Source: Mytilus trossulus
Lineage: Eukaryota
Length of the DNA stretch: 64,000 nucleotides
Reading direction: 5' to 3'
Assembly: GCF_036588685.1 (NCBI RefSeq)
Contig: NC_086386.1
Coordinates: 19,406,001 to 19,470,000 of the forward strand
The notes under the pieces were generated by a model. That model saw only the letters and a list, made by a program, of their open reading frames with translations, did no database searches and was not told the origin of the DNA. The position numbers and the translations under genes were made by a program. Shown here piece after piece: positions 200 through 46,000 of this stretch; position 1 is the stretch's first letter; every line of letters starts with the position of its first letter.

Positions 200-492
200 T
201 TGAGATACTATATTCCCGGTTCTATTTTTGCTATTTTTTAGTTTCCGTATTTTAAAATAAACTTAATATCATCATATCCTTTTAATATTAAATCGGCCTC
301 ATTGCACTCAATGTCTCTTACTATAATTATATCCTACATTGCTCATATTATCAATTTATTATTTGTGTATTACTTATTGTGTATTTCACTAATGTTTATA
401 TAATCATTGTATTATGATGTTTTTGTATCTTGCCTGACAAGGGCCCATGATTGGAAAAATAAAATAATGTCTAATGTCTAATGTCTAATGTC
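200..492 (+). mobile_element. Probable non-LTR retroelement 3' end with (ATGTCTA)n tail
   Basis: AT-rich UTR-like stretch, AATAAA, then about 4 heptamer repeats at 466-492; left boundary approximate. Confidence 0.4.
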
Positions 493-2154
493 ATACACAA
501 CAAACAACAACCACTAAAATACTTAGCAACCTGACTTGGGACTGGCACATACCGAATGTAGAGGGGTTAACAAGTCAACTTTCTAGGATTATGACATCAA
601 CGATAAAGATTAATTAGCGAGTTTGGTATTACTAGTACCATAGGCATACAATTTGTAGGGTGCCTCTAATGCAGTAGGGTCTACATTCCAGAGCAGCTAA
701 GATCATCCCCCAATGTTTGATTGATACATGCTGCTTCGTTTTTAGAATTTGTGTTGTGTATTTATAGACGGTTTTACTTTTTTGTCGTTATTTTTTTGTC
801 ACGACTTTGTCGGCTTCTCGTCGACATGTGATCTTTGAATGGCCACTTTGTATATGTTTCCACCTTTTTCCTCCTCTAAGTCATGATAGGGTAATTTTTT
901 CTATACGCAAAAAATAATCTAACTTTCTAATTTATTTTGAAACGTTTTATATGTTTCAAGAATATTATTCTCTCTTCCGTTCAAATATGTTGAGGCTAGA
1001 AAAGATAAGACAAACTTTAGAAATTTTAAAAAGGAGATGACCTTTATTTGAATATTATTTGATGAAATTGCTGTTAAACATGTATAAAACCTCCACCAGC
1101 CATCCTGTGTGCGGCATCTGCTTATACTGGTCCCTTTTTTCTAATTGATACTCAAATTTGTTCATCCTCTCCACCATCGAAACAAATTAAGGGGAACCAT
1201 CTAATTTTGAGATTTTTGGTCTGTGAAAAAAGGCAGCTTTAAAAAGAGGTAGTAGCCGGGCTATTTTACCGGCTTTGGTGAAATAGCTTATATATATAGC
1301 CTCTTAATTCCTTTGTAAAGAGCTCCATAAACCTCTGCTTAAACTCTTCGCATATGAATCAAACATAAAGTTTATTTCACGTTTTCATTCTGACAATGTC
1401 CAATGTCTTACGGATCATTTCCAATGCTGATGAACAATTTTTTTATTTTTTTTTATTAAATTAGACAGACAAATAGCATCGCTATTTTGCTGGAGCCTGT
1501 AAAATAACTCTGAAGAGGCTAATATGCCAAAAATAGTAAAAGGCGTTGAAAACATAATTGCAATTGACAGCGTCTTATCTACAATTACAACGGCACTGCT
1601 TACGATGAGACTATGCGCTAACATTTATTATTTGCACATTTGGCGATTTGTGTCACATCATATATACTGGTTGGCGTTTATACTCTCCTCGACCGGAAAA
1701 ATATACTGATTCTTCGGCGTTTTAAAATGGTAAAGAAAAAAAGATCGCCGATAAATGTTATTGGGTCCTACTATGAACTACAGACACTTTTCATCGAACC
1801 ATATGCATGGGCCATTTTTGCAAGTCATATATATAGAGAATACGATATAACAAATCGAATGCCAGCAACAATGCCAGCAACAATAAAGTCACGGCAGTGT
1901 TGTATTTGCGCCAAAAATAAAAAAAAAATGTTTTCTATTGCGTGAGAACTCCTTGTTTCTCCACAAAAAAAATATCTCATTAAACAGAGGGACAATATTT
2001 CAGAAGGGGGGGGGGGGGTATGATTTTTATTATCCTGTAACGTTGTTATTTTTTCGCGAATGCTTATTTTCATTTTTTGGACACATGCCTGTCTTTGCCA
2101 AAGATTTACTTAAAAAAAGAGGGGGTGGTTTTCTGTGTCATAAATTGTTGTTTA

Positions 2155-2309
2155 GGGAGCTACCAATTAGTTTTTATGGGGGGAAAGGATCCATATCTCT
2201 GTACGTCCTGCCTTTTTAATTTTTTACTTTATTCGGTCCTGCCTATTTTTTTCAAATTTCATCCTAGCCACCCCCCCCCCCCCCCCATAAAAATCAATTG
2301 GTAGCTCCC
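2155..2309. mobile_element. PIF/Harbinger-like MITE (partial relative at 8115-8280)
   Basis: TIR GGGAGCTACCAATT...AATTGGTAGCTCCC; TTA duplicated on both sides. Confidence 0.8.
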
Positions 2310-2685
2310 TTAGCGCACAGCGCAAGCATTTTTATTTAGTTTTTCAACGCTATCAATAAAACACTTTTTTTCATAAATCTAACACTATGAGGTGTGGAAT
2401 ATATCTTTTTTTAATCTGTTTGACCAATTTTTTTTTTATCAACTTGCCGCATGGGGATCAGAATATTTTTTATTTAAAAAAAAATACTTTCCCCCTTAAA
2501 AAGATAAATGTTCGTTCCCTTAGTACCTAGCCAGAAAATTCATATTCAAAATTAGATGCAGATCCAGGATTTGACTTGAAAGGGGGAACCCGGCGGGGCC
2601 CCCAAAACTAAGCAACGTTTATGTAGTGGGACATCTAAAAAGTTTAGATACCATAGCTCCTTTAGTGGGACCGGGCCCTCTACCC

Positions 2686-3474
2686 GGGTCCTACTAAAAT
2701 GCGCCCGGGTGAAGAAAAAGCCCCCGGGGAAAAGAAAAAGCGCCAGGGGAAGAACAAATAGCGCCTGGGGGAAAAGAAAATGCGCCCGGGGAAAATGTAT
2801 AGATATTTTATTAACCAGAGACAACTTTGTGTCGATAAAATAGGTTATGAACATTGATTTACATTGATTTTTTTAAAAATTTTAGACAATTAATTTGCAA
2901 ATTCAGATAATAGACATTCATAATAAAGCACTATTAAAACAAGTATGATTTTTTCAAAGTTTACAATAATATATGAATACTATTTCAAAAGACAGATAAT
3001 AATAGATCACAGTTTATGCGGAAGATTTATAAAATGTGAAACTTCAAAAGACATGTTTTTCAAAAACAATATTAAAATGAAAAATGTAAAAAAAAAACCT
3101 TAAATTTCACAGATAAATATTTATCTAATCAAAATTAAAAGAGTTACACATAATAAATCAGCAAATAAAGCAGTACTATACATGTACAGTAGTTAAATGA
3201 AGGGAGTAAAAAGCAGGAGTTTGGTTTAATTCAAAACTATGCATTAAATTCCTGATAAGCATATATATAGACATTAAAACAGTCAAAGTTTTAGTTTTAA
3301 ATTATAAAAAGATATAAACAACACTTTCGATGTAGCATCGTACATATCCCAATTTATATTAAGGACAACACAAGCAATGATTTTTTTTAAGAAAAAAAAT
3401 ATTGTTATAAAATATTATTATTTTAATCCCACGGGCGCTAATTTTCCTTCCCCGGGCGCTTTTTAGTAGGACCG
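2686..3474. mobile_element. MITE with subterminal GCGCCCGGG repeats and 8-bp TSD, nested in an older small MITE (~2553-3497)
   Basis: TIR GGTCCTACTAAAA.GCGCCCGGG; CTCTACCC at 2678-2685 and 3475-3482. Confidence 0.85.
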
Positions 3475-3735
3475 CTCTACCCACCAAAATCCGACACTAA
3501 AATTCCTTCTGCCCCATATCCGAGCTAATTATGACTTGCAATCCCCTTTTCAAAAAAAAAATCCCTCTCACAAGAGATTAGCTGTCTAATTCGACACTGG
3601 TGTAAATTAATTTATCACAGATCATAACTTTGAAACTCGAATTTCAAATTTCAAACATTTATATATTAATTTCGGGTAAGAAAAACAAGGGTGCTGAACA
3701 GTTTTCTGATCCCTATACATATTGATTTGACCCAG

Positions 3736-3945
3736 ATTCTCGCCTGAAAACATCAAAAGAAATCATTCGCGAGAAATCGTGGGAAGTAATCATCGGTCCT
3801 TTGATGTGTGCCACGTGACCTTGTCAGTTTCCCCATGCGGAGTTCATCAATTTCGTGCACTTTTAGCCGAATCAGCTGATGAAGAGTGTGCGACAGGGAC
3901 ACACTCATAAGGTGCACACGCGTTGTCGCGAAAACAATTATTATT
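3736..3945 (+). promoter_or_regulatory. CpG-rich promoter/5'UTR of the OTU gene
   Basis: CpG cluster in a CpG-poor background; TCGCGAGA-like motif near 3767, CCTTTGATG 3798-3806, CACGTG 3812-3817, CGCGAAAA 3927-3934. Confidence 0.6.
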
Positions 3946-4092
3946 ATGCATTATTATGTGAACAGTCCAGGAAAGAGTAACCAAAGATCACAAAAACTTT
4001 CAAGCATGGACAGTTATTTGTCCACAGTTGGCCTGTGGAGAAAACCTATTGCCCGTGATGGGTTTTGTTTGTTTCGAGCAACTTCTGAACAG
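3946..4092 (+). CDS. OTU gene exon 1 (MHYYVNSPGKSNQRSQKLSSMDSYLSTVGLWRKPIARDGFCLFRATSEQ), OTU Cys box
   Basis: DGxCLFRA motif; donor CAG|GTGAGT, phase 0. Confidence 0.93.
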
Positions 4093-7000
4093 GTGAGTTT
4101 ACAAATGTAGTTTCTGTTGCAGAAACTGCACTTATGAAAATATTTTTTAAATTGCTATAATTTATATGATGTTTATGAATTATTATGTCTTTAATCTGCA
4201 TTTTTACAGCAAGATATTTCTGTAATATGAAACGGAAAATGTAAATAATAAATCCGCTGTTTGTTATTTGTTCATTTCGCCGTTGCATTTTGTAAGATTT
4301 CATATTTATATTGTTGTTTAGCTCCTGGTATAAAGAATTCATACAGCAATAGTCTTGACATCAAGAGAGACCATAATACGTGTATCAAGAATTTATTCTA
4401 TACTATGCGACCCATTCATTCCAGTGTTACTTTTTATTCCTTATTATCTGATGTCGGGAAAGACTTTTAGATAATTGTTGATATTAGGAATTCAATTATT
4501 GTTAAACAAAAAAAGTTCTCTTTTTTTTAAGATGAAAGCAATGATTTTTCGACATCAGAAAAATCATCTACAGTACATAGTTTCTTGATATTAGAAATGA
4601 GATTAATAGAAATCCGTTTTATGATATGAAATGATTGTGACTTTCTAGGATTAAAAATATTTTTTCATGTTTTCTGATATCAACAGATCAATAATTTGAA
4701 TTTTAGATGTATGTATTATAAGTAGATATATAATTGTAGGAAAAGCAGTTTTTGATATAAAAAGTAAAATTTGAAATGAAGGCAGGACTTTGAGTAAAAA
4801 ATAAAAAGTCATGTCAAAACTGTTCATCCTTGCCCGCCCTCTTCACCCCCAATAAAATCAAATGATAGCACACTGAGTTAAAGTTGTGGAAATATATTTT
4901 CAGGTATACATGACGCAAGCTCATTATGAAAAGCTATACAATCTATCCAAAGAGTTTTTCTACAGACTTGAAGGAATAGACCAGGATTATGTAAGTTTAC
5001 ATGCATGCAATAGAATTTTAATTTTGATTTTATACAATAACAGATTTATAGATTTTGATTTACATTTTCTATAACATTTTAATTTCTATTGGACACAGCT
5101 TCTATGCAATTGCATTTTTTAAAAAGAAGTTTGACAAAAATTTATTTTGATCTTGAGCAGCTTAACCTTTCATTTATTTCCTCAACAAGTTGCAATAAAA
5201 CCTGATTAAAATGTTCAGCTGATTTTTACAGAGTTATCTCCCTGTAGTGTTATGTACATGTATCATCTTAATCCGAATAATGTCGGTCGTTATATTCTAC
5301 TGATCTCCGTCTAATCTCTGATTGCTACATTAGCCTCGATAGGCTAGAGAGCGCAGAATTATTCGAGTTAGTATCATCTTGGAGTTCATCCTGAAATAAA
5401 ATGATTCTGAGTATTCTCCCTTTATAAACCAAAGTCATTAGTCTTTCACTTGTTAAACATACATACAAAGATAAGAAAACAATTATCATATACATCTTTC
5501 CATTTCCATAAAAAGTCTTGCAAATATGTTTTATTTTTGCGTTAGAATGAGCACAATTCAATAAAAAAATTCAGACTGATCAATTGTAGGCTTTTTTTAC
5601 AATGAATGGAATACTCTCAGATTATTTTTCTGACCCTATAGTGTAGATAAATGTGTGATTAAATATTTTAATTTGTTTTACTTATTACAGGTATGGACAG
5701 AATCCGATGCTATGTTTTCTTTGTCTGTTATATGCAGGTAATTATCAAAAGCCCTTACAGGAACCCCTTTAAAAAATCATCCTTCTCTTGATGTCATGAA
5801 GAAAAATATCTGTATTGTCTTTCTCTTGTTGATATGAAGGGAAAAAATCCAGATTGTCTGCAAGACGTGATTTATGCACATTATGTCCCAATTAAACTAA
5901 GATTATGACAACTAGAGGTGATTTTGGAATATGATTGGGAAATTTTTAACCACCTTTTGAAATGATCAGCATTTGACCTTGAGTTGGGCCTCGCAATGCT
6001 AGGAACAAAAACTTGCAGACAGAGTTTATAGTTGTTCAGCGAGTCACTTGCTGTTCTAAAGTTATGCCCCTTTAAAACATGAAGAATGCAAATTATTTTA
6101 TTTTTATGCACCATTTATGGGCATTATGTTTTCTGGTCTGTGTGTCCGTTTGTTAGTTTGTTGTCTGTTTGTCCCTCTTCAGGTTGAAGTATTTGGTCGA
6201 GGTAGTTTTTGATGCAGTTGGGGCCAATCAATTTGAAACTTAGTATACATGTTCCCTATGATGTGATCTCGGAGATTTTGTCACATTTTCACAGTCCACT
6301 GAACATAGAAAATGATAGTGCAGATGGGGCATCCGAGTACTTGGGACACATTCTTGTTGCACTTTAAATTAAGAAAGCCTGATTTTGAATTTATCAAACT
6401 CAAATACAACAGAACTTGTCAGAAGATTATTTCATTTGACAATGTTTGAATAAAAAATATGGAAAAAAACACGCAGCACAAACAGATATGTATCATAATG
6501 ATAAATCTAATTGGTCAGATTGCAACTTTTTTTTCTCTTGAAACAATGAAGTCAAATTAAATCCCTCAAACTTGTTGGAATGAAGATGGCAAAATATTGT
6601 ACAGTATACAATGTAGATCCATATTAATTAATATTATTTCCATTATTCTATTTCAGACATAATTTTTTAGTATATGAAGTACCTGGATGTCCACCATATT
6701 TAGCTATAGATAATTGTTTTTCAGAAAATGTAAGTTATGATAATTATTTTGAGAATTTTTTGGCATGATTTCTATAAACTATAAACTTCTAGCATTTATA
6801 ACTGGTCTAAATCTAAATCTGTGTGTCCATTTCTCAAAAGGACATCAATAAGGTCTTCAAAAGATATGATTGGCTTTAATTGCCTTGTTCATCATATAGG
6901 CAGTCTACTTCGTCTTATAGCGATGATATTAAGGTGGTACCTAACACTACAGGGAGATAACTCTGTAAAGTCAGCTAAACGTTTTAACTACGTTGTGTTG

Positions 7001-37000: not shown

Positions 37001-40000
37001 CACTATGTTTGTTAGCAATTCTCATTTTTTTTTGTCAATTCCCAGGTCCCACTAGACCTCATTTCCCATTTTCAGGACACAATAATTTATAACTTTCACT
37101 TGTAATGCTTACATAAAATCGGCAATCCCACATCATGCTTGGACCCCAATAAGACCCACTATATACATTTTTGATGTCTGTGTGTATTGATGTAGCTCCT
37201 TTATATAAGCCTATATTTTATTTCATTGCATGCATGTTTTGATAGCCTTAGTTTTGTTGTTATGGATGGGTTTTATGTTTTATTGCAGATGAAAGCAATG
37301 ACTGTTGAACAGAACCTCCCCCCTCGCATGACTCAGCCTGCAGCTCTCCCTCCTCCTCTTCCTCTTTCTAATGTGGTACAGAATGACAGTAAGTAGGATT
37401 GTGGTGTAGCTACTTATAAAAAGGGGGTGTGGCTGTTAGTGGAAAGTTGGACGGCAGGTAATAAAAAGGGGGCATGGCAGTTTATTACAAGGGGTCAGGC
37501 TGTTGATGGGAAGGTGGGATAGTAGTTATTTCAAAGGGACATGGGAGTTTATTTGAATGGGTGTGTGTCTATTATTGGAAAGTTTGACAGCAGTTAATAA
37601 AAAGGGGGCATGGTAGTTTATTAAAAGGGGGCCAGGCTGTTGATGGGAATGTGGGATAGTAGTTATTTCAAAGGGACATGGGTGTGTGTCTATTATTGGA
37701 AAGTTTGACAGCAGTTAATAAAAAGGGAGTCAAGCTGTTGATCAGAAGGTGTGATAGTAGTTATTTCAAAGGAACATGGGAGTTTATTTGAATGGGTGGT
37801 GTGTCTATTATTGGAAAGTTTGACAGCAGTGAATCAAATTAGGCATGGCATTTTATAGAGAAAAGGGGTGGGGAATGTGAAACAGATAGACCATTAAATA
37901 AGAAGGGGCATAGCAGTTTATAGAAAGAAGGGTTTTTTATTTTTTGGAAAGGGAATATAGAAGTCACTAAAAAAGGGCATTGTTGTTAATAGAGATAGGA
38001 TGGTCTGTAATTGGAAGGCATAATATCAGTTAAATGAAATAAGCGGACTTTCTACAAGAATGAAGTAGTATGTGGTTAGTTGGACTGGTGAATTGGAATA
38101 TGGTAGTAAATGAAGTTCTTTGAAAGTGAGAAATAGCAGTATTATGACTAACATGAATATGTCAGAAAACTGTTGGATCAAAGCAATAAATTAGTTTGGG
38201 TAATATAGACAATTTGTTTGAGAATTTACTTTGGTTTCCAGAACAAAAGTTTTACAGCAAAACTAGGTTTAAGCTTTTGGTTGAATTCTATTCAAATTCT
38301 TTTGACAATTCTACTAGTATCTACAAGTTGGTGGTAAGAAAATATTGTGATTAAGTACTAGTTATACAGTAAACTACCTGTCAGTACATAACTTAAGAAA
38401 GGTATTAGGGTTTTAATTGTTTTTTGAAATGAGTCCCCATTTTGTAGTTTATCATACCTTACACGCTATAGTAAATGTTTCCTATGTTAATTTCTCATTT
38501 CGGTTATGGGTAATGTCCTTTAACAGTTGCATGTTGTTTCCTCTACTATTTGAAGATTCAGTGAAAATTAAGTAAACATTTCCCGTATAATATGACATGA
38601 TGCTTTTCAGAACCAGCAGTACCAGTATCTAATATGCCACCCCCACCACCAGTTACGATGGCTGTCCCAATGCAGCCCCCACCAGTCTTCCATCAACCTC
38701 CACTTATGGCATACGGTGGCCCTATGATGGACCAACCACCACATCCACATATGAATGTACCTGTGGCATGTCTTGGTATGGATGGCCAGCCACCACCGAT
38801 GCCACCTCATATGATGAATGGTGGTGCTATGGTTGCCTATAATGGTGAGAACGGCATGATGGGACAAGAAAGTATGACAAATCCAGTTGTTTATGTTCCA
38901 TTCATGGAAACAATTATGCCTACAGAAGTTAATGTGGATTATCCCCCTTCTGAAGATTCCAGGGGACTGGATCTCCCTCTTAATGGTAGGTATTTTATGA
39001 AGAGTGACAATACTAATAAATGATAATAGAACATTGCTGAATCTCTGTTTGGTTTAGAACAAACTAGGTACTATGGATTAATTTATTTTCATGGGTACCA
39101 ATTTTATATGAATTTGGTTAAATATACTTACCATGAAATTACATTTATATTATATAGAATATGTTTGCTTTCACAACATGTTCTCATCGCAATTAACTAG
39201 GTGATTAAAAATTACATCCATGAGATGTACTCACCTACGTCATAGTTCACCTGTGTAACATACACTAGCTTTAGTTTTAATTTTTGCGTTCAAGAGAACG
39301 CATGTTTCTCGTCGGCAAGGATTCTTAACAGTTTACTGTTGAAAATCCTTATGTTTTATAAAAGACATTATTTGTTTTCGGAATATCGGTATACGATTGA
39401 TTTAATGTGAATCAGAATACAGCACTTCTGCCAAGATTCTGCTATGCACGTTTTCGTCATTTTTACAGCTTACGAGTCTGGAAATACGACGACATAGAAA
39501 ATGACCTTTGTTTAGCCGCCATTTTCAAACATTAAATCGGGTCCGAGGAAAGGCAGAATTTATCTGTCAAAATCGGACATGTTACGTGAGTACTACGTTT
39601 TAAAAAAAAAAAAAAATATATTTTTAAACGGATGTTTATTTCTTTTTTCAAGCTCAGCTGACCGGATTTTTCACTGCATTAGAGCAATGCTACGAAACGG
39701 GTCGAGTGTAAAGTTTGGATAAAGTCGATTGTTTACAATTTGCAATCTGTACACGAGACTGTGTAAACACATCACTATATTAAAATCAGAATAGGTATTT
39801 TGACCAGATCTGATTGTTTTTCATGTGGAAAACGTCCGTATGGGAGCGTATACCACTTTTGTCACTTGTTTACAATTTGCAGTCTGTTACGTGTACACCT
39901 GGTACACGAGACTGTGTAAACACATAACTATTGAATCAGAAGAGGTATTTTGACCAGATCTGATTATTTTAATGTGGATAACGTCCGTATGGGAGCGTAT

Positions 40001-43000
40001 ACCACTATTGTGACTAGAACCTTAATTGGTTCAATAAATTTCAATCAGAAAAGGGAATCTGCCCATTTCTGATTGTTTTATTTGGAAAACGTTTCATACA
40101 GAGAGCGTAGACCAACAGTGGTAATGTTTTAACAGTTGATAAATACATCACAATCAGAATAGGGATTTTGCCCACAACTGATGATGTTTATTTGGTTAAC
40201 CTTCCATTCAGGGAACATAAACCATATTTATTGAAAATAAAACGTGCTCAATGGATCACTATAGAATTGAAATAGAATAGGGATTTTGCCCAAGTCTATT
40301 TGATTAATGTTGACATGTTTCATACAGGAAACATAGGAACTAGAACAACATGCATGATTTAGAATCTGTAAGTTGATTTCATTCTAATAAAATACAGATT
40401 TGATATCTTACATAAAATTAAATCATAACTATTTATTAATTGCACATTGATATTTATTGAGCATAGAATTGCACGTGGATGATTGTTGCAAATAAAATAA
40501 ATTAGAATCAGACTAGTGAATTTAAGTACAAGTCTATCTGATTTTTCTAGACATCCTTCCACCCAGGGAAAATTATGTCTACTTTTTATTATATTTTAAA
40601 ACAACACAAGCATAGCTAATATATGGTTGCACATTGTTTTTGTGATGAACCAACAGTTAAGTCAATTGACATATTTGCTCATATTGATAATATATTGAAC
40701 AAGTGTCGGGAAATAGTCAAGACAGATATTAAAGACACTAAAATAATACATTGTTATCTAGTACAATACAAATGTGATTGCAGTTTAAGCATACCAATAC
40801 ATACTTCTTTTAAATATGTCCAGTTTAAATCAGGACAGTAATATTTTTCCAGAACAGCAAATTGCTGTAAATATTTAATTATTTTTTACTGATAAATAAT
40901 TCTCCAATGCTCTAACAGACATGGAGACAGTAAGAATGGAGCACTGTTCTAAATACAGTTGATAGCTTGTGACAACTCTTTTTACTAATATTAAATTTCA
41001 TGGTCAGTTTACTTATGACAAGAACAACATGAATATTATAAGTATGAACTGCTATAACCAATTGTTTGTTTTTGTCGGCAGTAAGGAAACAAAGGCTTTT
41101 ATATTTTTTTATGTAAACATTAGATTGTCTATTGAATAAAGAGTTTAGGGGATGCCATGATGCATTTCACAAAGACTCATTCAAGGTAATGGCTTATATA
41201 TTGATTACATAATTCAGAGTGTACATTGCCAATGCATATAATATAATATGTACTAATTCTGTTTTGTTTTGAGTACACAAAAAAGAGGTGATAACATAAG
41301 ACTTAAGAGAATATCTTATCCTCACTATATGGGAATCACTGTCAAATTATACATATATGTATCTTCCAATCATGAAAGCAAAAGGAGTTTGGATGCTCTT
41401 TTAAAGATAGAAAATTATGCCTAATAATTTACATCTTAAGTTTTTTTAAGCAATGCCAACAGATGGGCAAGTTTCTGCTATAAGGATTCATTCATTGGGT
41501 CTGTTTTATTCTTAATGTGAGATTGGTAGAACCCAACAGTTTATGCAATGGCTACACATTGTTTTTCCTAGAGTTAAATATTGATTCAGAATTCTGAAGT
41601 ATAGAGGACTCAAATATGCTGATTTATAGAAACAAGATTATCATTAATAAATTAGATCTTGTAAAAAAAAAAAAAAAATAAAAAAAAAAAAAAATAAGTA
41701 AAATATTGGTAAATAAATAAATAAGATTTAAGCATTGTGGATGCCGGATTTATTTAAAATACTAGACATGATCTAGGAAATAGAAGTAGTTCTCAAGATT
41801 TGAAACTATCTATTATACAGCTCTTTATATAAATTTTTTATTTAGTCAGTCTTTACGTCAGATGCAGAAAAAAAAAAGAAAAAAAAGAAGAGGTTATTTT
41901 TGGAGTAACACATGATGTACCAATATAAACATATAATATATATACTTTTCAATTGGTTCTCAAATTTTAGCACCATTGTAGAAGCAGTTAATCTAACAGC
42001 AAAATGTAGGAAAAGCAATTTATTCAAAAGACTGATTAATAGTTAGCAAATAGCTTTCAATTGTCTAAGAATAGTACATGGAAGTAAAATATAGTATGAT
42101 AATTCCATGATTATATCAAATCAAATACGAGACATTTTCTTAATATTATACCTAAATATTAAAATGTCACTGTTTATTTTTGCTCATTATATGCATAAAG
42201 TTAAAAAAATCTAGTCTGGTCAAAGTCAAATTGTGTATAATCTACATGCTGGAAGGTTTTCCGAATGCATGTGATTTTAATTTCGGAATTGATGGTAATT
42301 ATTCATTTTTCAATTTCCATATTACCAGCCAGAATAATATAAATATAAAGCATAGAGTTAGTATCTAATGCAAGAATATGCTACACAAAATTAAAATGTG
42401 TTTATTTTAAACAATTACTTTGAATTTTGATTCAATATTGTTTTGAAAGATGTGATTATTTAAATCACATTAATTTTGTTTTTTCCAAATCTGGGGACAA
42501 ATGCAAAATTCTTCTGAGTGACTAAGTTAACCAAATGGCTGGGTTGAAGTCACAAAATACTACAAAAAGTTGTTTGGTTTATATATATTGAATCATATCA
42601 GAATGTATAGGATTCAGATGAGGTGAACCAAGACAGAAATAAAATGAGCATTTTTGATAGTGAAACCATTTCTGAAATAACTAAGAACACTTAGGATACT
42701 GCAAGTTAGTACAAGTGTTTTCCATTTTGTCAAACAAGTGTTTTTCTTTAAATACAACTATAGAACTATATTTGACAAGTTGCATTTAAGTATTTCTGAT
42801 AGCGAAATAATTTCTGAAATTAATATAAACAATTGTCAAGAGCAACATACAAGAGTTGTTCATTACATGTATGTCAAATTTTTGTTTCTTTAAATTTGGA
42901 ACTGTGTACATGGCAAGATATTCTAGAAAGTTAACCGCTGTGAAATGTTAATTAGAAATATCAAAACATTTTATTTTAGACAGATTTTTCATAGCTGGAG

Positions 43001-46000
43001 AAAATCATCTGTTAGCATTCTTTTTGGATTTATAAGGACAACAATCATGGCTTTAATTCAGCTCAACATCCAAATGTTCTGTGGAAGCAGTATATCAATG
43101 GAAACATGTATACTGAAACTTTTCCACTGATTTGTCCATTTCTGTATTTTTACACTTGAGTAGTCCAATACAAAACAAAAATATTGTTCATGGTTGAAAT
43201 GGTAGACATTGTATTCAAAGGTTCTACCACTCATAGAAATTTTATCAGATTTTTAAAATTTAGTCAGTTTAGAGAATTGTCATTATACAATAGTACAAGA
43301 CTTCTCTTGAAGAAAATATTTTATTCTTAATCTATAAAATATTAAAAGTAGTATATCTAGCAGAGAAGCAAATTCTCAGGGACTATAACTTTAAAAAAGT
43401 TTAAAGATTAATCCAGATTTAGCATAATCATGAAACAACTTTGATTTGAGTCTTTAATAAACTTTGATTGTATTAAGGACACCTATTTACAAAGTATATT
43501 TTTTAATTGATTATAATTCTTTAATTAAGTAGAAAAGAATTTATTTCGAAAGATATGATATTGAACAGGTTATCAAAAGACGACAGCAATCATATATTAT
43601 CTGTTATTATATTAATATAGACAGAGACATATAAATTGAATTATATGTCTTTGATATAGAGAAAACAATGGAAAGTTAAAGAAAGGTAATAATGTTTCCA
43701 AATAAACTTAAGTTTCAAAGTTGAAAGTAAATGAAATTAAGGTTAGATTAGTTCTTGTCGATTTGTACAAGCAACAAGAACAACCTATTCAGAAACAAAT
43801 GCTTATTTACTGTTGCATAAATATTACAACACATTTAGCTCATAATGAAGGAGCTTTAATATAATTATTTCTATACTGACCTGCAGATTATTTATTCATC
43901 AGATATAGAAAGATGGGGTATATATATATACATGTGAGTGCCATTGAGACAACTCTACATCAAGTCTATTAATTTTGCATACTTGTATTTATACAATCTG
44001 CAAAGTTTGCCATTGATACATATAGTTATGCTTGATACATATAGTTATGCTTGATACATATAGTTATGCTTGATACATATAGTTATGCTTGATACATATA
44101 GTTATGCAGCATAGCTTCATTGTATAATAAATTCAGTAATTTCGGTTTTTACTAATATCCGTATTTACAAAAATTAAATGGAGTTACATTTTAAAAAATT
44201 TCACATTATTTTTTCTATGTTGAAATTGTATGTGTGTGAGAGAATTTATCCTCCACCAAATGAAATACTGCTTGTTAATCAGTAAATATTCTATATAATA
44301 TAAATGTAATTTCATGGTAAGTATATTTAACCAAATTCATATAAAATGGTAATTTTTGAAATCTCAAGAAGAGATTTTATATGAATTTATAGGGTTAAAT
44401 ATACTTACCACAATCCACCACCACCCCTGGAATAAATTCAGTTTTTTGTTCACTTAATTGAAATTATTCAATTAAAAGACAAATTAAAACTAAAGCTAGT
44501 GTATGTTACACAGGTGAACTATGACGTAGGTGAGTACATCTCATGGATGTAATTTTTAATCACCTAGTTAATTGCGATGAGAACATGTTGTGAAAGCAAA
44601 CATATTCTATATAATATAAATGTAATTTCATGGTAAGTATATTTAACCCTATAAATTCATATAAAATCTCTTCTTGAGATTTCAAAAATTACCATTTTCA
44701 TCGAATAACACTTGCAAGTTCATGGAATTTCATTTTTATGGTTATGTTGATTGCATTAAAGCCTTTAGAAATTTTGTCCTTTGTTGAACATTTAATTTCA
44801 TTGTTCACCTATGCCATGAAATCAACCAAAAATTGGTTCTGTCCGTGACTTTATCATATTCAACACTTTTTAACTGCTTATAAAGAAAGATTACAGTATA
44901 AAACTTGCCTCTATTGTCACTTCCTAACAAATGAACACTTTAAATAAGTAATTTATAGAATTCTGTTTTCTTTTTCAGATATCAACACACTAAGATTCTT
45001 CTTTAACCTTGGTGTCAGTGTAAGTATTCATTTTTCTCACAAACGTAAGAAATTCTATTGGCAAATATATTGTAGTAGCTTTACATGATAGAAATGTGGT
45101 GTGATGGCATAAGCCTTTTATTCATAGGATCATACCCGATTGATTATGTGTCTAATAACAAAGATTAATAATAGCAATGGTTTATGAATATGTGCAAGCC
45201 ATGAGATATTTACACATTTCACAATGGGTAGATGGTAAAGTTAAACTAAAAGTGAAACTTATCTGATTGTGATTGTTTCAATGGAATAAATTACAAACTT
45301 TTCTGACAATGAAAAACATTTTGGGACAATTCAGTTGTAGCTGACTTAGTACTTAAATAGAGAGCAAGTTTAGAATTTGAAAACATGTGAATTGTTGCAG
45401 TGGCAATCATGCCACATCTTGCGACTTTTATACCTAGGCTACTCTGAATGTTAAAAAAAACACTAGTACAATTATTTAGTAGTACACAGTAGTATACATT
45501 GTTTTCATACAGTTGAAATGAGAACTTAAACAAAATGCAGAGTATTTTTGCTCTAAATTGTTAAATTATTGACTTCTAAATATATCTATACAGTGGCGGA
45601 TGCAGGAATTTTCGAAAGGGGGGGTGCAGGGGGGGGGGGTGCAAAATTATCCCGATTCAAATGCATTGATCGGCCAAAATAAAGGGGGGGTGCGGACCCC
45701 CGGAACCCCCCCTCTGGATCCGCCACTGCTATATATATGACATGTGTAAGGGAATATAAATGTGAAACAACCAACCAACCAAAACCAGTTCAACAATGAA
45801 CTGTTGTCTATATAATGCCATGCTCAAACTATAAAAGTTTTGTTTGTTATAGCTATTACTAGAAAAATAAACACTTCTTTTTATTGGATGATTTAAGATT
45901 TCAATAATCAAATGAGTATACTGAATGTGCATGAAATATTTGCCACTGGACATTAAGTAACAACAATCAATCAATCTTAGAAAATATTTCGATCAATTGT

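Follow-up and report, generated by a model that had tools for sequence, protein, structure and literature searches.

A Non-Coding DIRS1-like Retrotransposon Family and Its Candidate Helper in the Mussel Mytilus trossulus

Anatomy of the element

The window analyzed here is a stretch of 64,000 nucleotides of Mytilus trossulus (assembly GCF_036588685.1, contig NC_086386.1, positions 19,406,001 to 19,470,000 of the forward strand), and all positions below without a contig name are counted from its first letter. Positions 39101-44698 hold an element of 5.6 kb that interrupts a repeated, MITE-like host sequence. The element has inverted terminal repeats (ITRs), an internal complementary region (ICR) near its 3' end and a right extension, but no genes. 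The features are as follows.

39068-39100 (no strand): left half of the interrupted MITE-like repeat, ending ...GGGTACCA; it matches two other loci of the genome, L068 and L069.
39101-39105 (+): left junction 5-mer ATTTT, with position 1 coming from the target and the last positions from the element.
39101-39136 (+): left terminal 36 nt, identical to the autonomous partner described below, including the outer, divergent part of the ITR (39101-39115).
39116-39283 (+): left ITR, the strictly complementary part (168 nt).
39284-44285 (+): non-coding, AT-rich interior or cargo (the whole element is 28.5% G+C), shared by all family copies examined.
39285-39302 (+): small hairpin with a 7-bp stem just inside the left ITR, within a block (39273-39306) conserved with the partner; the folds of the element and of the partner are -9.6 and -8.3 kcal/mol, with z about -3.
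39729-40351 (+): array of five hairpin units with periods of about 110-150 nt, absent from the short leader of the partner; the number of units varies between copies, and sequencing data include joints that go back 168 nt.
44013-44107 (+): 19-nt tandem repeat, 5 copies here; alignments of other copies break at this point, and one joint in the sequencing data skips 74 nt.
44243-44257, 44268-44283 and 44287-44296 (+): three short blocks upstream of and running into the ICR, conserved with the partner.
44286-44347 (+): left ICR, the reverse complement of the left terminus 39101-39162.
44343-44347 (+): circular junction AAAAT, where the two ICR halves overlap.
44343-44410 (+): right ICR, the reverse complement of the right terminus 44631-44698 including CTAT and the right extension; 44312-44410 (99 nt) is identical in the partner.
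44415-44427 (+): C-rich block just after the ICR, conserved with the partner.
44481-44648 (-): right ITR, the strictly complementary part.
44628-44698 (+): right terminal 71 nt, identical to the partner, comprising the outer ITR part with CTAT (44649-44667), the 31-nt right extension (44668-44698) with a 7-bp hairpin (44664-44682), and the right junction ATTTT (44694-44698).
44699-44812 (no strand): right half of the MITE-like repeat, a 74% match to L069 downstream of its single ATTTT; joints and loose ends of reads also support it.

A sequence-only reading of the window had described the 168-nt inverted repeat, the 4-nt CTAT insert on the right, the 31-nt right extension, the ICR that spells the junction of a circle, and a host MITE that is restored around ATTTT when the element is removed. 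We found that observation to be correct at every base. The arms 39116-39283 and 44481-44648 are 100% complementary, the outer 15 nt also match apart from CTAT, both ICR halves are 100% complementary to their termini, and the right extension lies within the right ICR match but outside the ITR. Both genomic junctions read ATTTT, and uninterrupted copies of the MITE-like sequence carry a single ATTTT (L069) or ATTGT (L068) at that point. Reads pile up on the left flank, and their loose ends continue into the other half of the MITE. Perfect repeats of 168, 68 and 62 nt cannot be chance, and the same pattern recurs in dozens of copies and in independent sequencing runs; it is, therefore, not an assembly artefact.

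The longest ORF inside the element is 72 aa, and the longest stop-free stretch is 84 aa. A Pfam scan of the 30 longest stop-free stretches gave only chance-level hits (E>=0.03) and none to a reverse transcriptase (RT) or tyrosine recombinase (YR) profile. An Rfam scan of 38500-45300 at E<=1 returned nothing, and tblastn with the proteins of the partner or of other mussel YR elements found no hit.

The family and an autonomous element with the same ends

The element is one member of a multi-copy family, called N here. An exhaustive search with a 27-nt junction pattern gave 52 exact hits; subtraction of one left end and three partner ICRs leaves about 48 N-type ICRs, plus a few with one mismatch. 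At least 27 copies aligned over most of the interior, a lower bound because only about 40 hits were scored per DNA search. The 19 complete paired copies without a foreign insertion measured 5,389-5,598 bp. All copies examined share the same ORF-less interior, although its middle 1.9 kb was read in only four copies. In those four full copies the longest stop-free stretch was 83-123 aa, and a conservation profile showed no clear conserved islands in the interior. In contrast, the 125-nt ICR is 100% identical in most copies ascertained through their interior, even though those interiors are 86-96% identical, which is indicative of selection on the cis-acting parts. Sub-lineages of N differ by up to about 25%.

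Our first candidates for a helper were loci L061-L066, the top Phage_integrase hits in the genome. These were rejected because they have split direct repeats of the Ngaro/PAT-like kind, as seen in L061 and L066, and no likeness to N. Partial hits at 26.855-26.862 Mb of contig C5 were also rejected, as they represent a tandem duplication holding a 1.4-kb N fragment with no ORFs. However, an autonomous DIRS1-like element (A) with the same termini, right extension and ICR is present in the same genome. Element A is 5,508 bp, exemplified by G000:C6:30171026-30176534 (genome G000, contig C6; locus L089, 327-5835 on the minus strand), and its four copies are 99-100% identical, two of them 99.96%. 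It has ITRs of 160 nt at 100% identity and intact ORFs: one of 558 aa in the gag position, one of 617 aa (RVT_1 at 83 bits, RNase H-like), and a C-terminal recombinase (Phage_integrase, E 2.8e-5), although the score of the latter is just under the Pfam gathering score (24.4 against 27.1 bits). The copy of A on contig C1 shows no ICR junction within 2 mismatches.

N and A are identical over the left 36 nt, 99 nt of the ICR and the right 71 nt. Alignments of their ends also showed small conserved blocks at the inner ITR edges and on either side of the ICR, but the inner ITR matches only patchily. The interiors are unrelated; blastn at word size 7, tblastn and a colinear-diagonal test of N against A all came out at control level, so the idea that N is a decayed coding copy was rejected.

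Insertion sites, mirrored variants and recency

Among 25 distinct left sites, the junction 5-mers varied only at position 1 (A 20, T 3, C 1, G 1), giving NTTTT. The right 5-mers varied only at positions 4-5 (ATTTN or ATTGT). Of 20 junction pairs, 7 were non-identical. Together with the uninterrupted paralogous sites, these data show crossover within a shared TT(T) core and not a target-site duplication. No target preference was seen outside the 5-mer in 25 left and 26 right flanks; however, a second N copy sits at the same point of another copy of the MITE. One DNA contig of sequencing run X3 joins 39100 to 44694 with 5 shared letters, the form of an empty site, but it has only 25 nt on its shorter side and lies in a repeated flank, and is therefore only suggestive.

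The ITR arms were identical to each other in 18 of 20 copies. Four variable ITR sites, with eight occurrences in all, were each mirrored in both arms of the same copy, as the DIRS-1 model predicts. Recent activity is supported by these identical arms and by two copies at different sites, L023 and L026, which have 0 substitutions over about 1.56 kb. Two raw RNA-seq runs gave almost no reads inside the element, and contigs from a PacBio cDNA library covered only 39101-41856 and could be DNA carry-over or host read-through.

Inferred mobilization, alternatives and relation to other elements

Taken together, these data indicate that 39101-44698 is one copy of a non-autonomous DIRS1-like family that encodes nothing and is mobilized in trans by the gag-like, RT/RNase H and tyrosine-recombinase proteins of the low-copy element A, a reading to which we assign a probability of about 0.88. 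The cycle would follow the Cappello / Poulter-Goodwin model as summarized in PMC7192593 and PMC3266345. A sub-genomic sense RNA would be reverse transcribed, the left ITR would be rebuilt from the right ITR, and the outermost 62 and 68 nt would be rebuilt on the ICR, giving a circle whose junction carries one ATTTT. The recombinase would then cross that junction with a genomic A-TTT-T-like site, leaving (N)TTTT on the left and ATT(T)(N) on the right, with no target-site duplication. The anatomy, the family, the partner, the shared cis sequences, the junction pattern and the mirrored variants were observed directly, whereas the RNA and cDNA steps, and which proteins act, are inferred; the role of A specifically rests on shared ends. 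The mirrored variants and the conservation of the ICR give only indirect support for reverse transcription. The sequence-only reading had interpreted the locus as a recently active, large non-autonomous DIRS with non-coding cargo and borrowed enzymes, and that interpretation is supported: its predictions, namely more than one copy, no RT or YR remnant in the interior, an autonomous element with the same ends and signs of recent movement, all came out in its favor. Its T-run target is refined here to a crossover inside the TT(T) core.

It is possible, but unlikely, that N is excised and reinserted as a double-stranded circle by the recombinase of A alone, in a Crypton-like cut-and-paste or copy-out manner without RNA. 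Site-specific crossover at a short core and the near absence of RNA reads would fit this scenario. However, a pure recombinase mechanism needs no ICR, yet the ICR is the most conserved part of N, and such a mechanism does not explain the mirrored ITR variants. In Dictyostelium the ICR is essential after cDNA synthesis (PMC7192593). N itself has no recombinase gene, as a Crypton would, the only element sharing its ends encodes RT/RNase H, and about 48 N-type ICRs against 4 copies of A fits replicative spread. Alternatively, N could be the immobile remnant of a once autonomous lineage, resembling A at the ends by shared ancestry. The mean length of N (5,510 bp) is as expected if N descends from a coding element of the size of A, and N sub-lineages are diverged, but this scenario is also improbable. 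All copies, including the 25%-diverged lineage, share the ORF-less interior, so the amplifying masters were already non-coding, and shared decay cannot give ends 100% identical to A beside interiors with no residual likeness at all; the identical ITRs and the identical pair of copies also argue against it. Assembly error or duplication of host segments is refuted for the family as a whole. Some copies do lie in duplicated blocks (five truncated left ends with the same flank at C1:69.40-69.78 Mb, and the pair on contigs C72 and C8:36.17 Mb), but 25 distinct left and 26 distinct right flanks were counted, the boundaries are sharp at the same base, and the element is present at high depth in independent runs under several organism labels.

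The terminal anatomy of N is identical to that of DIRS1-like retrotransposons of molluscs and other animals, for example LgDIRS2 and AcaDIRS1 (Piednoel et al. 2011, PMC3266345), with an outer divergent ITR part constrained by the ICR, a strictly complementary inner ITR, a right extension, two abutting ICR halves, ATT-type termini as in most of the mollusc elements listed there, and insertion without a target-site duplication. The ranges in that paper are 66-316 bp for the ITR, 85-130 bp for the ICR sum and 9-75 bp for the right extension. N differs in having no gag, RT/RH/MT or YR, in its 5-kb non-coding interior unrelated to its partner, and in a junction overlap that reads as 5 nt, of which only the central TT(T) is always shared with the target. 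Non-autonomous members of the DIRS order are already known. TOC1 of Chlamydomonas reinhardtii, termed an "active nonautonomous DIRS retrotransposon" (PMC9940879), is non-coding and depends on proteins supplied in trans. TOC1 is about 5.7 kb, much the same size as N, but is an algal element that has split direct repeats and is not known to have ITRs plus an ICR, whereas the terminal repeats of N are inverted and its partner was identified in the same assembly. SIRE of Trypanosoma cruzi (PMC6681497) likewise keeps the terminal parts of its partner, VIPER, but is a deletion derivative of a few hundred bp made of VIPER's own ends, whereas N is full-sized with foreign or untraceable cargo. LARDs (large retrotransposon derivatives of LTR elements, for example Dasheng/RIRE2, cited in PMC9210276) also have a large non-coding interior, share ends with an autonomous partner and outnumber it, but have direct LTRs and integrase-made target-site duplications, whereas N has inverted repeats plus an ICR and is inferred to insert by tyrosine-recombinase crossover.

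A more speculative and rather unlikely possibility is that N is a length-matched, cis-optimized hyperparasite of its helper. The 19 complete copies average 5,510 bp against 5,508 bp for A although the interiors are unrelated, which would point to a length constraint (particle packaging or circle geometry) in DIRS replication. N-specific RNA structures, such as the five-hairpin array, might let N out-compete A for its proteins, which would explain about 48 N copies to 4 A copies.

DIRS retrotransposition is the least understood retroelement cycle. In the only experimental system, the ICR was shown to be essential and RT to act in trans, but whether the other proteins act in trans could not be answered, and a truncated donor did not complete a cycle (PMC7192593). 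The N/A pair is a natural helper-donor experiment; if N moves as inferred, it implies that all the proteins act in trans. The pair also delimits a candidate minimal cis set of 36 nt on the left, about 100 nt of ICR, 71 nt on the right and a few small blocks, and gives sequence-level support, in an animal, for two steps of the 1985 model: rebuilding of the left ITR from the right ITR, and insertion by crossover in a 2-3-nt core. It adds to DIRS1-type elements a LARD-like category, which annotation pipelines that rely on RT or YR will miss.

Structure and copy number of the element

A repeat search of positions 38500-45300 returned three perfect inverted pairs, as follows.

39116-39283 with 44481-44648, 168 nt
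39101-39162 with 44286-44347, 62 nt
44631-44698 with 44343-44410, 68 nt

The last two pairs abut in the internal segment 44286-44410 and overlap by AAAAT (44343-44347). Inspection of both ends showed that the outer 15 nt also match, apart from a CTAT on the right, that a 31-nt right extension follows, and that ATTTT stands at both junctions. The sequence-only reading had described these same repeats, and its observation held at exactly the coordinates it gave. Inside the element, the longest ORF was 72 aa and the longest stop-free stretch was 84 aa. The element is 28.5% G+C.

We searched the 1.3-Gb assembly (G000, in which the window is C14:19406001-19470000, contigs being numbered C) for further copies of this family, termed N. 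Each of the similarity searches scored only about 40 candidates, so that these counts are lower bounds, whereas the search with the junction pattern was exhaustive.

Searches of the assembly with parts of the element (query: result)
Left 300 nt: 40 scored hits at 97-100%, of 175 candidates
125-nt ICR: 34 hits at 100% and 6 at 99%
4.9-kb interior: 27 copies aligned over most of the query, at 86-96% identity with gaps counted
27-nt circle-junction pattern, up to 2 mismatches: 83 hits, 52 of them exact

Of the 52 exact junction hits, one was a left end whose flank happens to match and three were ICRs of the autonomous partner, which leaves about 48 N-type ICRs plus a few with one mismatch. Twenty copies could be paired end to end; 19 of these measured 5,389-5,598 bp, and one had a 1.2-kb insertion. 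All loci examined had the same interior next to both ends. The middle of the interior was read in four full copies, including a lineage only about 75% identical, and none had a stop-free stretch above 123 aa.

Some loci were partial or duplicated. Five copies of an N left end at C1:69.40-69.78 Mb (loci L010, L011, L012, L016 and L018) stop matching at element position 727 and all have the same left flank, indicating a segmental or tandem duplication that carries a truncated or interrupted copy. At C5:26854500-26862500 (L070), a tandem duplication with a 4,063-bp unit, 99.3% identical, contains a 1.4-kb internal fragment of N (element 452-1862) without its ends. The same N insertion with the same flanks was found on the unplaced contig C72 (L022/L031) and on the chromosome-scale contig C8 at 36.17 Mb (L028/L045), about 1.5% apart, which is probably a retained second haplotype or a recent duplication.

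Two repeated regions within the element varied in length. Positions 39729-40351 hold five hairpin units with a conserved stem (AATCAGA...TCTGATT) and periods of about 110-150 nt. The number of units differed between copies and between sequencing runs, in which joints going back 168 nt were seen; the array was largely missing from the 75%-identical lineage and absent from the autonomous partner. Positions 44013-44107 hold a 19-nt tandem repeat with 5 units in this copy. Alignments of the other copies broke between element positions 4931 and 4989, and DNA run X3 showed a form that skips 74 nt; this looks like a VNTR inside the element.

No coding remnant was found. The 30 longest stop-free stretches gave no Pfam RT, RNase H or recombinase hit, and a search against Rfam returned nothing. 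A tblastn search with the RH and YR ORFs of other mussel YR elements found nothing, and one with the partner's own ORFs found nothing below an E value of about 0.02. Likewise, a colinear-diagonal comparison of the interiors of N and the partner equaled a reversed-sequence control (0.366 against 0.364 for the best 300-nt windows).

The autonomous partner and its shared sequences

We read 1.2 kb on the interior side of the 18 junction-pattern hits whose interior had not yet been read. Most were N-type. Three, however, had the ICR but, in place of N's interior, an ORF ending in a tyrosine-recombinase domain. The full element, termed A, lies at 327-5835 on the minus strand of locus L089; it is 5,508 bp long and 35.2% G+C, with 160-nt perfect ITRs, an ICR made of the complements of both ends, and a right extension. 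It has a 558-aa ORF in the gag position with no Pfam match, and a 617-aa pol ORF with RVT_1 at 83 bits, weak RNase H-like matches and a C-terminal part resembling the DIRS 'MT' region seen in L061, a locus of another recombinase-bearing family. A recombinase was identified at the C-terminus of a 1,020-aa ORF, although the Phage_integrase match (24.4 bits, E 2.8e-5) was just under the 27.1-bit cut-off. The frame that ends in the recombinase stays open for 1,020 aa (L089 1023-4082, minus strand) and overlaps the whole 617-aa pol ORF in another frame, whereas Piednoel et al. 2011 (PMC3266345) reported no long ORF overlaps in mollusc DIRS1-like elements. The copies of A on C6 and C13 were 99.96% identical. 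The genome holds four full copies at 99-100%, and the next DIRS families were at most 76% identical.

Other recombinase-bearing elements were also present. The genome gave 730 first-look candidates for Phage_integrase; the best-scoring family (L061-L066), with a 347-aa stop-free frame holding the recombinase domain and an RNase H/MT-like ORF upstream, has split direct repeats (102 nt, 535 nt apart) and so is Ngaro/PAT-like. ICR-like regions 85-93% identical to those of N and A were found at C8:65.70 Mb, C13:48.60 Mb and C5:66.64 Mb (L073, L087 and L088), next to sequence that is neither N's interior nor an intact ORF of A. These may be further derivative families or old deleted relatives of the partner.

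N and A were aligned at both ends and were identical over three stretches, given in positions of the N copy.

39101-39136, the left 36 nt
44312-44410, 99 nt of the ICR
44628-44698, the right 71 nt, including CTAT, the extension and its 7-bp hairpin

Short conserved blocks were also seen at the following places.

39273-39306, the inner edge of the left ITR, with a small hairpin that folds in both elements
the mirror of this block at the inner edge of the right ITR
44243-44296, upstream of and into the ICR
44415-44427, just after the ICR

The inner parts of the ITRs aligned poorly, with only scattered matches, even though each element's own two arms are perfectly complementary. Nothing else matched. 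Conservation within N points to selection on the cis parts. Among copies ascertained through their interior, most had a 125/125 ICR although their interiors were 86-96% identical, and the roughly 75%-identical lineage kept 36/36 at the left end and 89 of 93 aligned positions of the ICR core.

Insertion junctions, ITR variants and expression

Left junction 5-mers were ATTTT (20), TTTTT (3), CTTTT (1) and GTTTT (1). Right junction 5-mers were ATTTT (18), ATTTG (6), ATTGT (1) and one aberrant AATCT. In 7 of 20 paired copies the two 5-mers differed, with every left variant at position 1 and every right variant at positions 4-5. A mutated 5-bp duplication would not give this pattern, whereas a crossover inside the central TT(T), between a circle junction ATTTT and a target N-TT(T)-N, does. 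This matches the published DIRS1-like model of recombination at a short junction sequence, no target-site duplication, and ATT-type termini in most of the mollusc elements listed (PMC3266345).

The window copy interrupts a MITE-like repeat (39068-39105 and 44768-44812), whose uninterrupted copies read ...GGGTACCA-ATTTT-CGTGG... (locus L069) or carry ATTGT at that point (locus L068). The repeat is very abundant (word depth about 5,000 in run X3) and is present in RNA reads. Its GGGTACCA-ATTTT site resembles the element's own junction, ...TTACC-ATTTT, and was hit by at least two N copies, the second of which (C4:80.95 Mb) sits at the same point of another copy of the repeat. A copy of the partner on C1 also has a CCA|ATTTT left flank. 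One DNA contig of run X3 joins 39100 to 44694 with five shared letters, which is the predicted empty form; however, its short side is only 25 nt and the flank is repetitive, so this contig is suggestive only. Upstream of the insertion, a proline- and methionine-rich 129-aa ORF (38634-39023) ends 78 nt before the element. It may be a host exon, which would place the element in or next to a gene.

Across 20 copies, four ITR positions varied, with eight occurrences in all, and every one was present in both arms of the same copy. The only unmirrored changes were in an old duplicated pair. The DIRS-1 model, as summarized in PMC7192593, has the left repeat restored from the right one and the extremities restored on the ICR, and it predicts exactly this. 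It also predicts the diverged but internally perfect ITRs of N and A.

Two raw RNA-seq runs gave almost no reads in the element. Contigs from a PacBio cDNA library covered 39101-41856 only and stopped at an internal A-rich tract, in contrast to DNA run X3, which covered the whole element. This looks like internal oligo-dT priming on sense RNA, but DNA carry-over or host read-through is not excluded. Runs under four coded organism labels (A-D) and several metagenome labels held 0.09-0.59 of the words sampled from a stretch that includes the element and its flanks.

Relation to known elements and age of the family

The terminal anatomy is that of DIRS1-like elements in every respect tested. The coding criterion is not fulfilled, and N is therefore a non-autonomous derivative. 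The interpretation in the sequence-only reading, that this is a recently active, large non-autonomous DIRS that borrows a helper's enzymes, was supported; the anatomy, the family, the sequences shared with A, the junction pattern and the mirrored ITR variants are seen in the sequence itself, whereas replication through RNA and cDNA and the supply of proteins by A are inferred. Non-autonomous members of the DIRS order are already known, namely TOC1 (PMC9940879) and SIRE (PMC6681497). In the literature searched, the phrase 'non-autonomous DIRS' and its variants occurred only in two versions of the same Chlamydomonas paper, and we found no description of a full-sized ITR/ICR-type non-autonomous family with its helper in an animal, curated repeat libraries being outside this search.

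N copies average 5,510 bp and A is 5,508 bp, with no traceable homology between the interiors. This could reflect a length constraint, complete sequence turnover of an old coding ancestor, or chance.

Within-copy ITR differences totaled 4 in 3,360 nt. Nearest-neighbor substitution divergence of the interiors was mostly 0.5-1.5%, and was 1.3% for the window copy. One pair of copies at different sites, with different flanks, had no substitution in about 1.56 kb. The family is therefore old, since its lineages are up to 25% apart, and was also active very recently.
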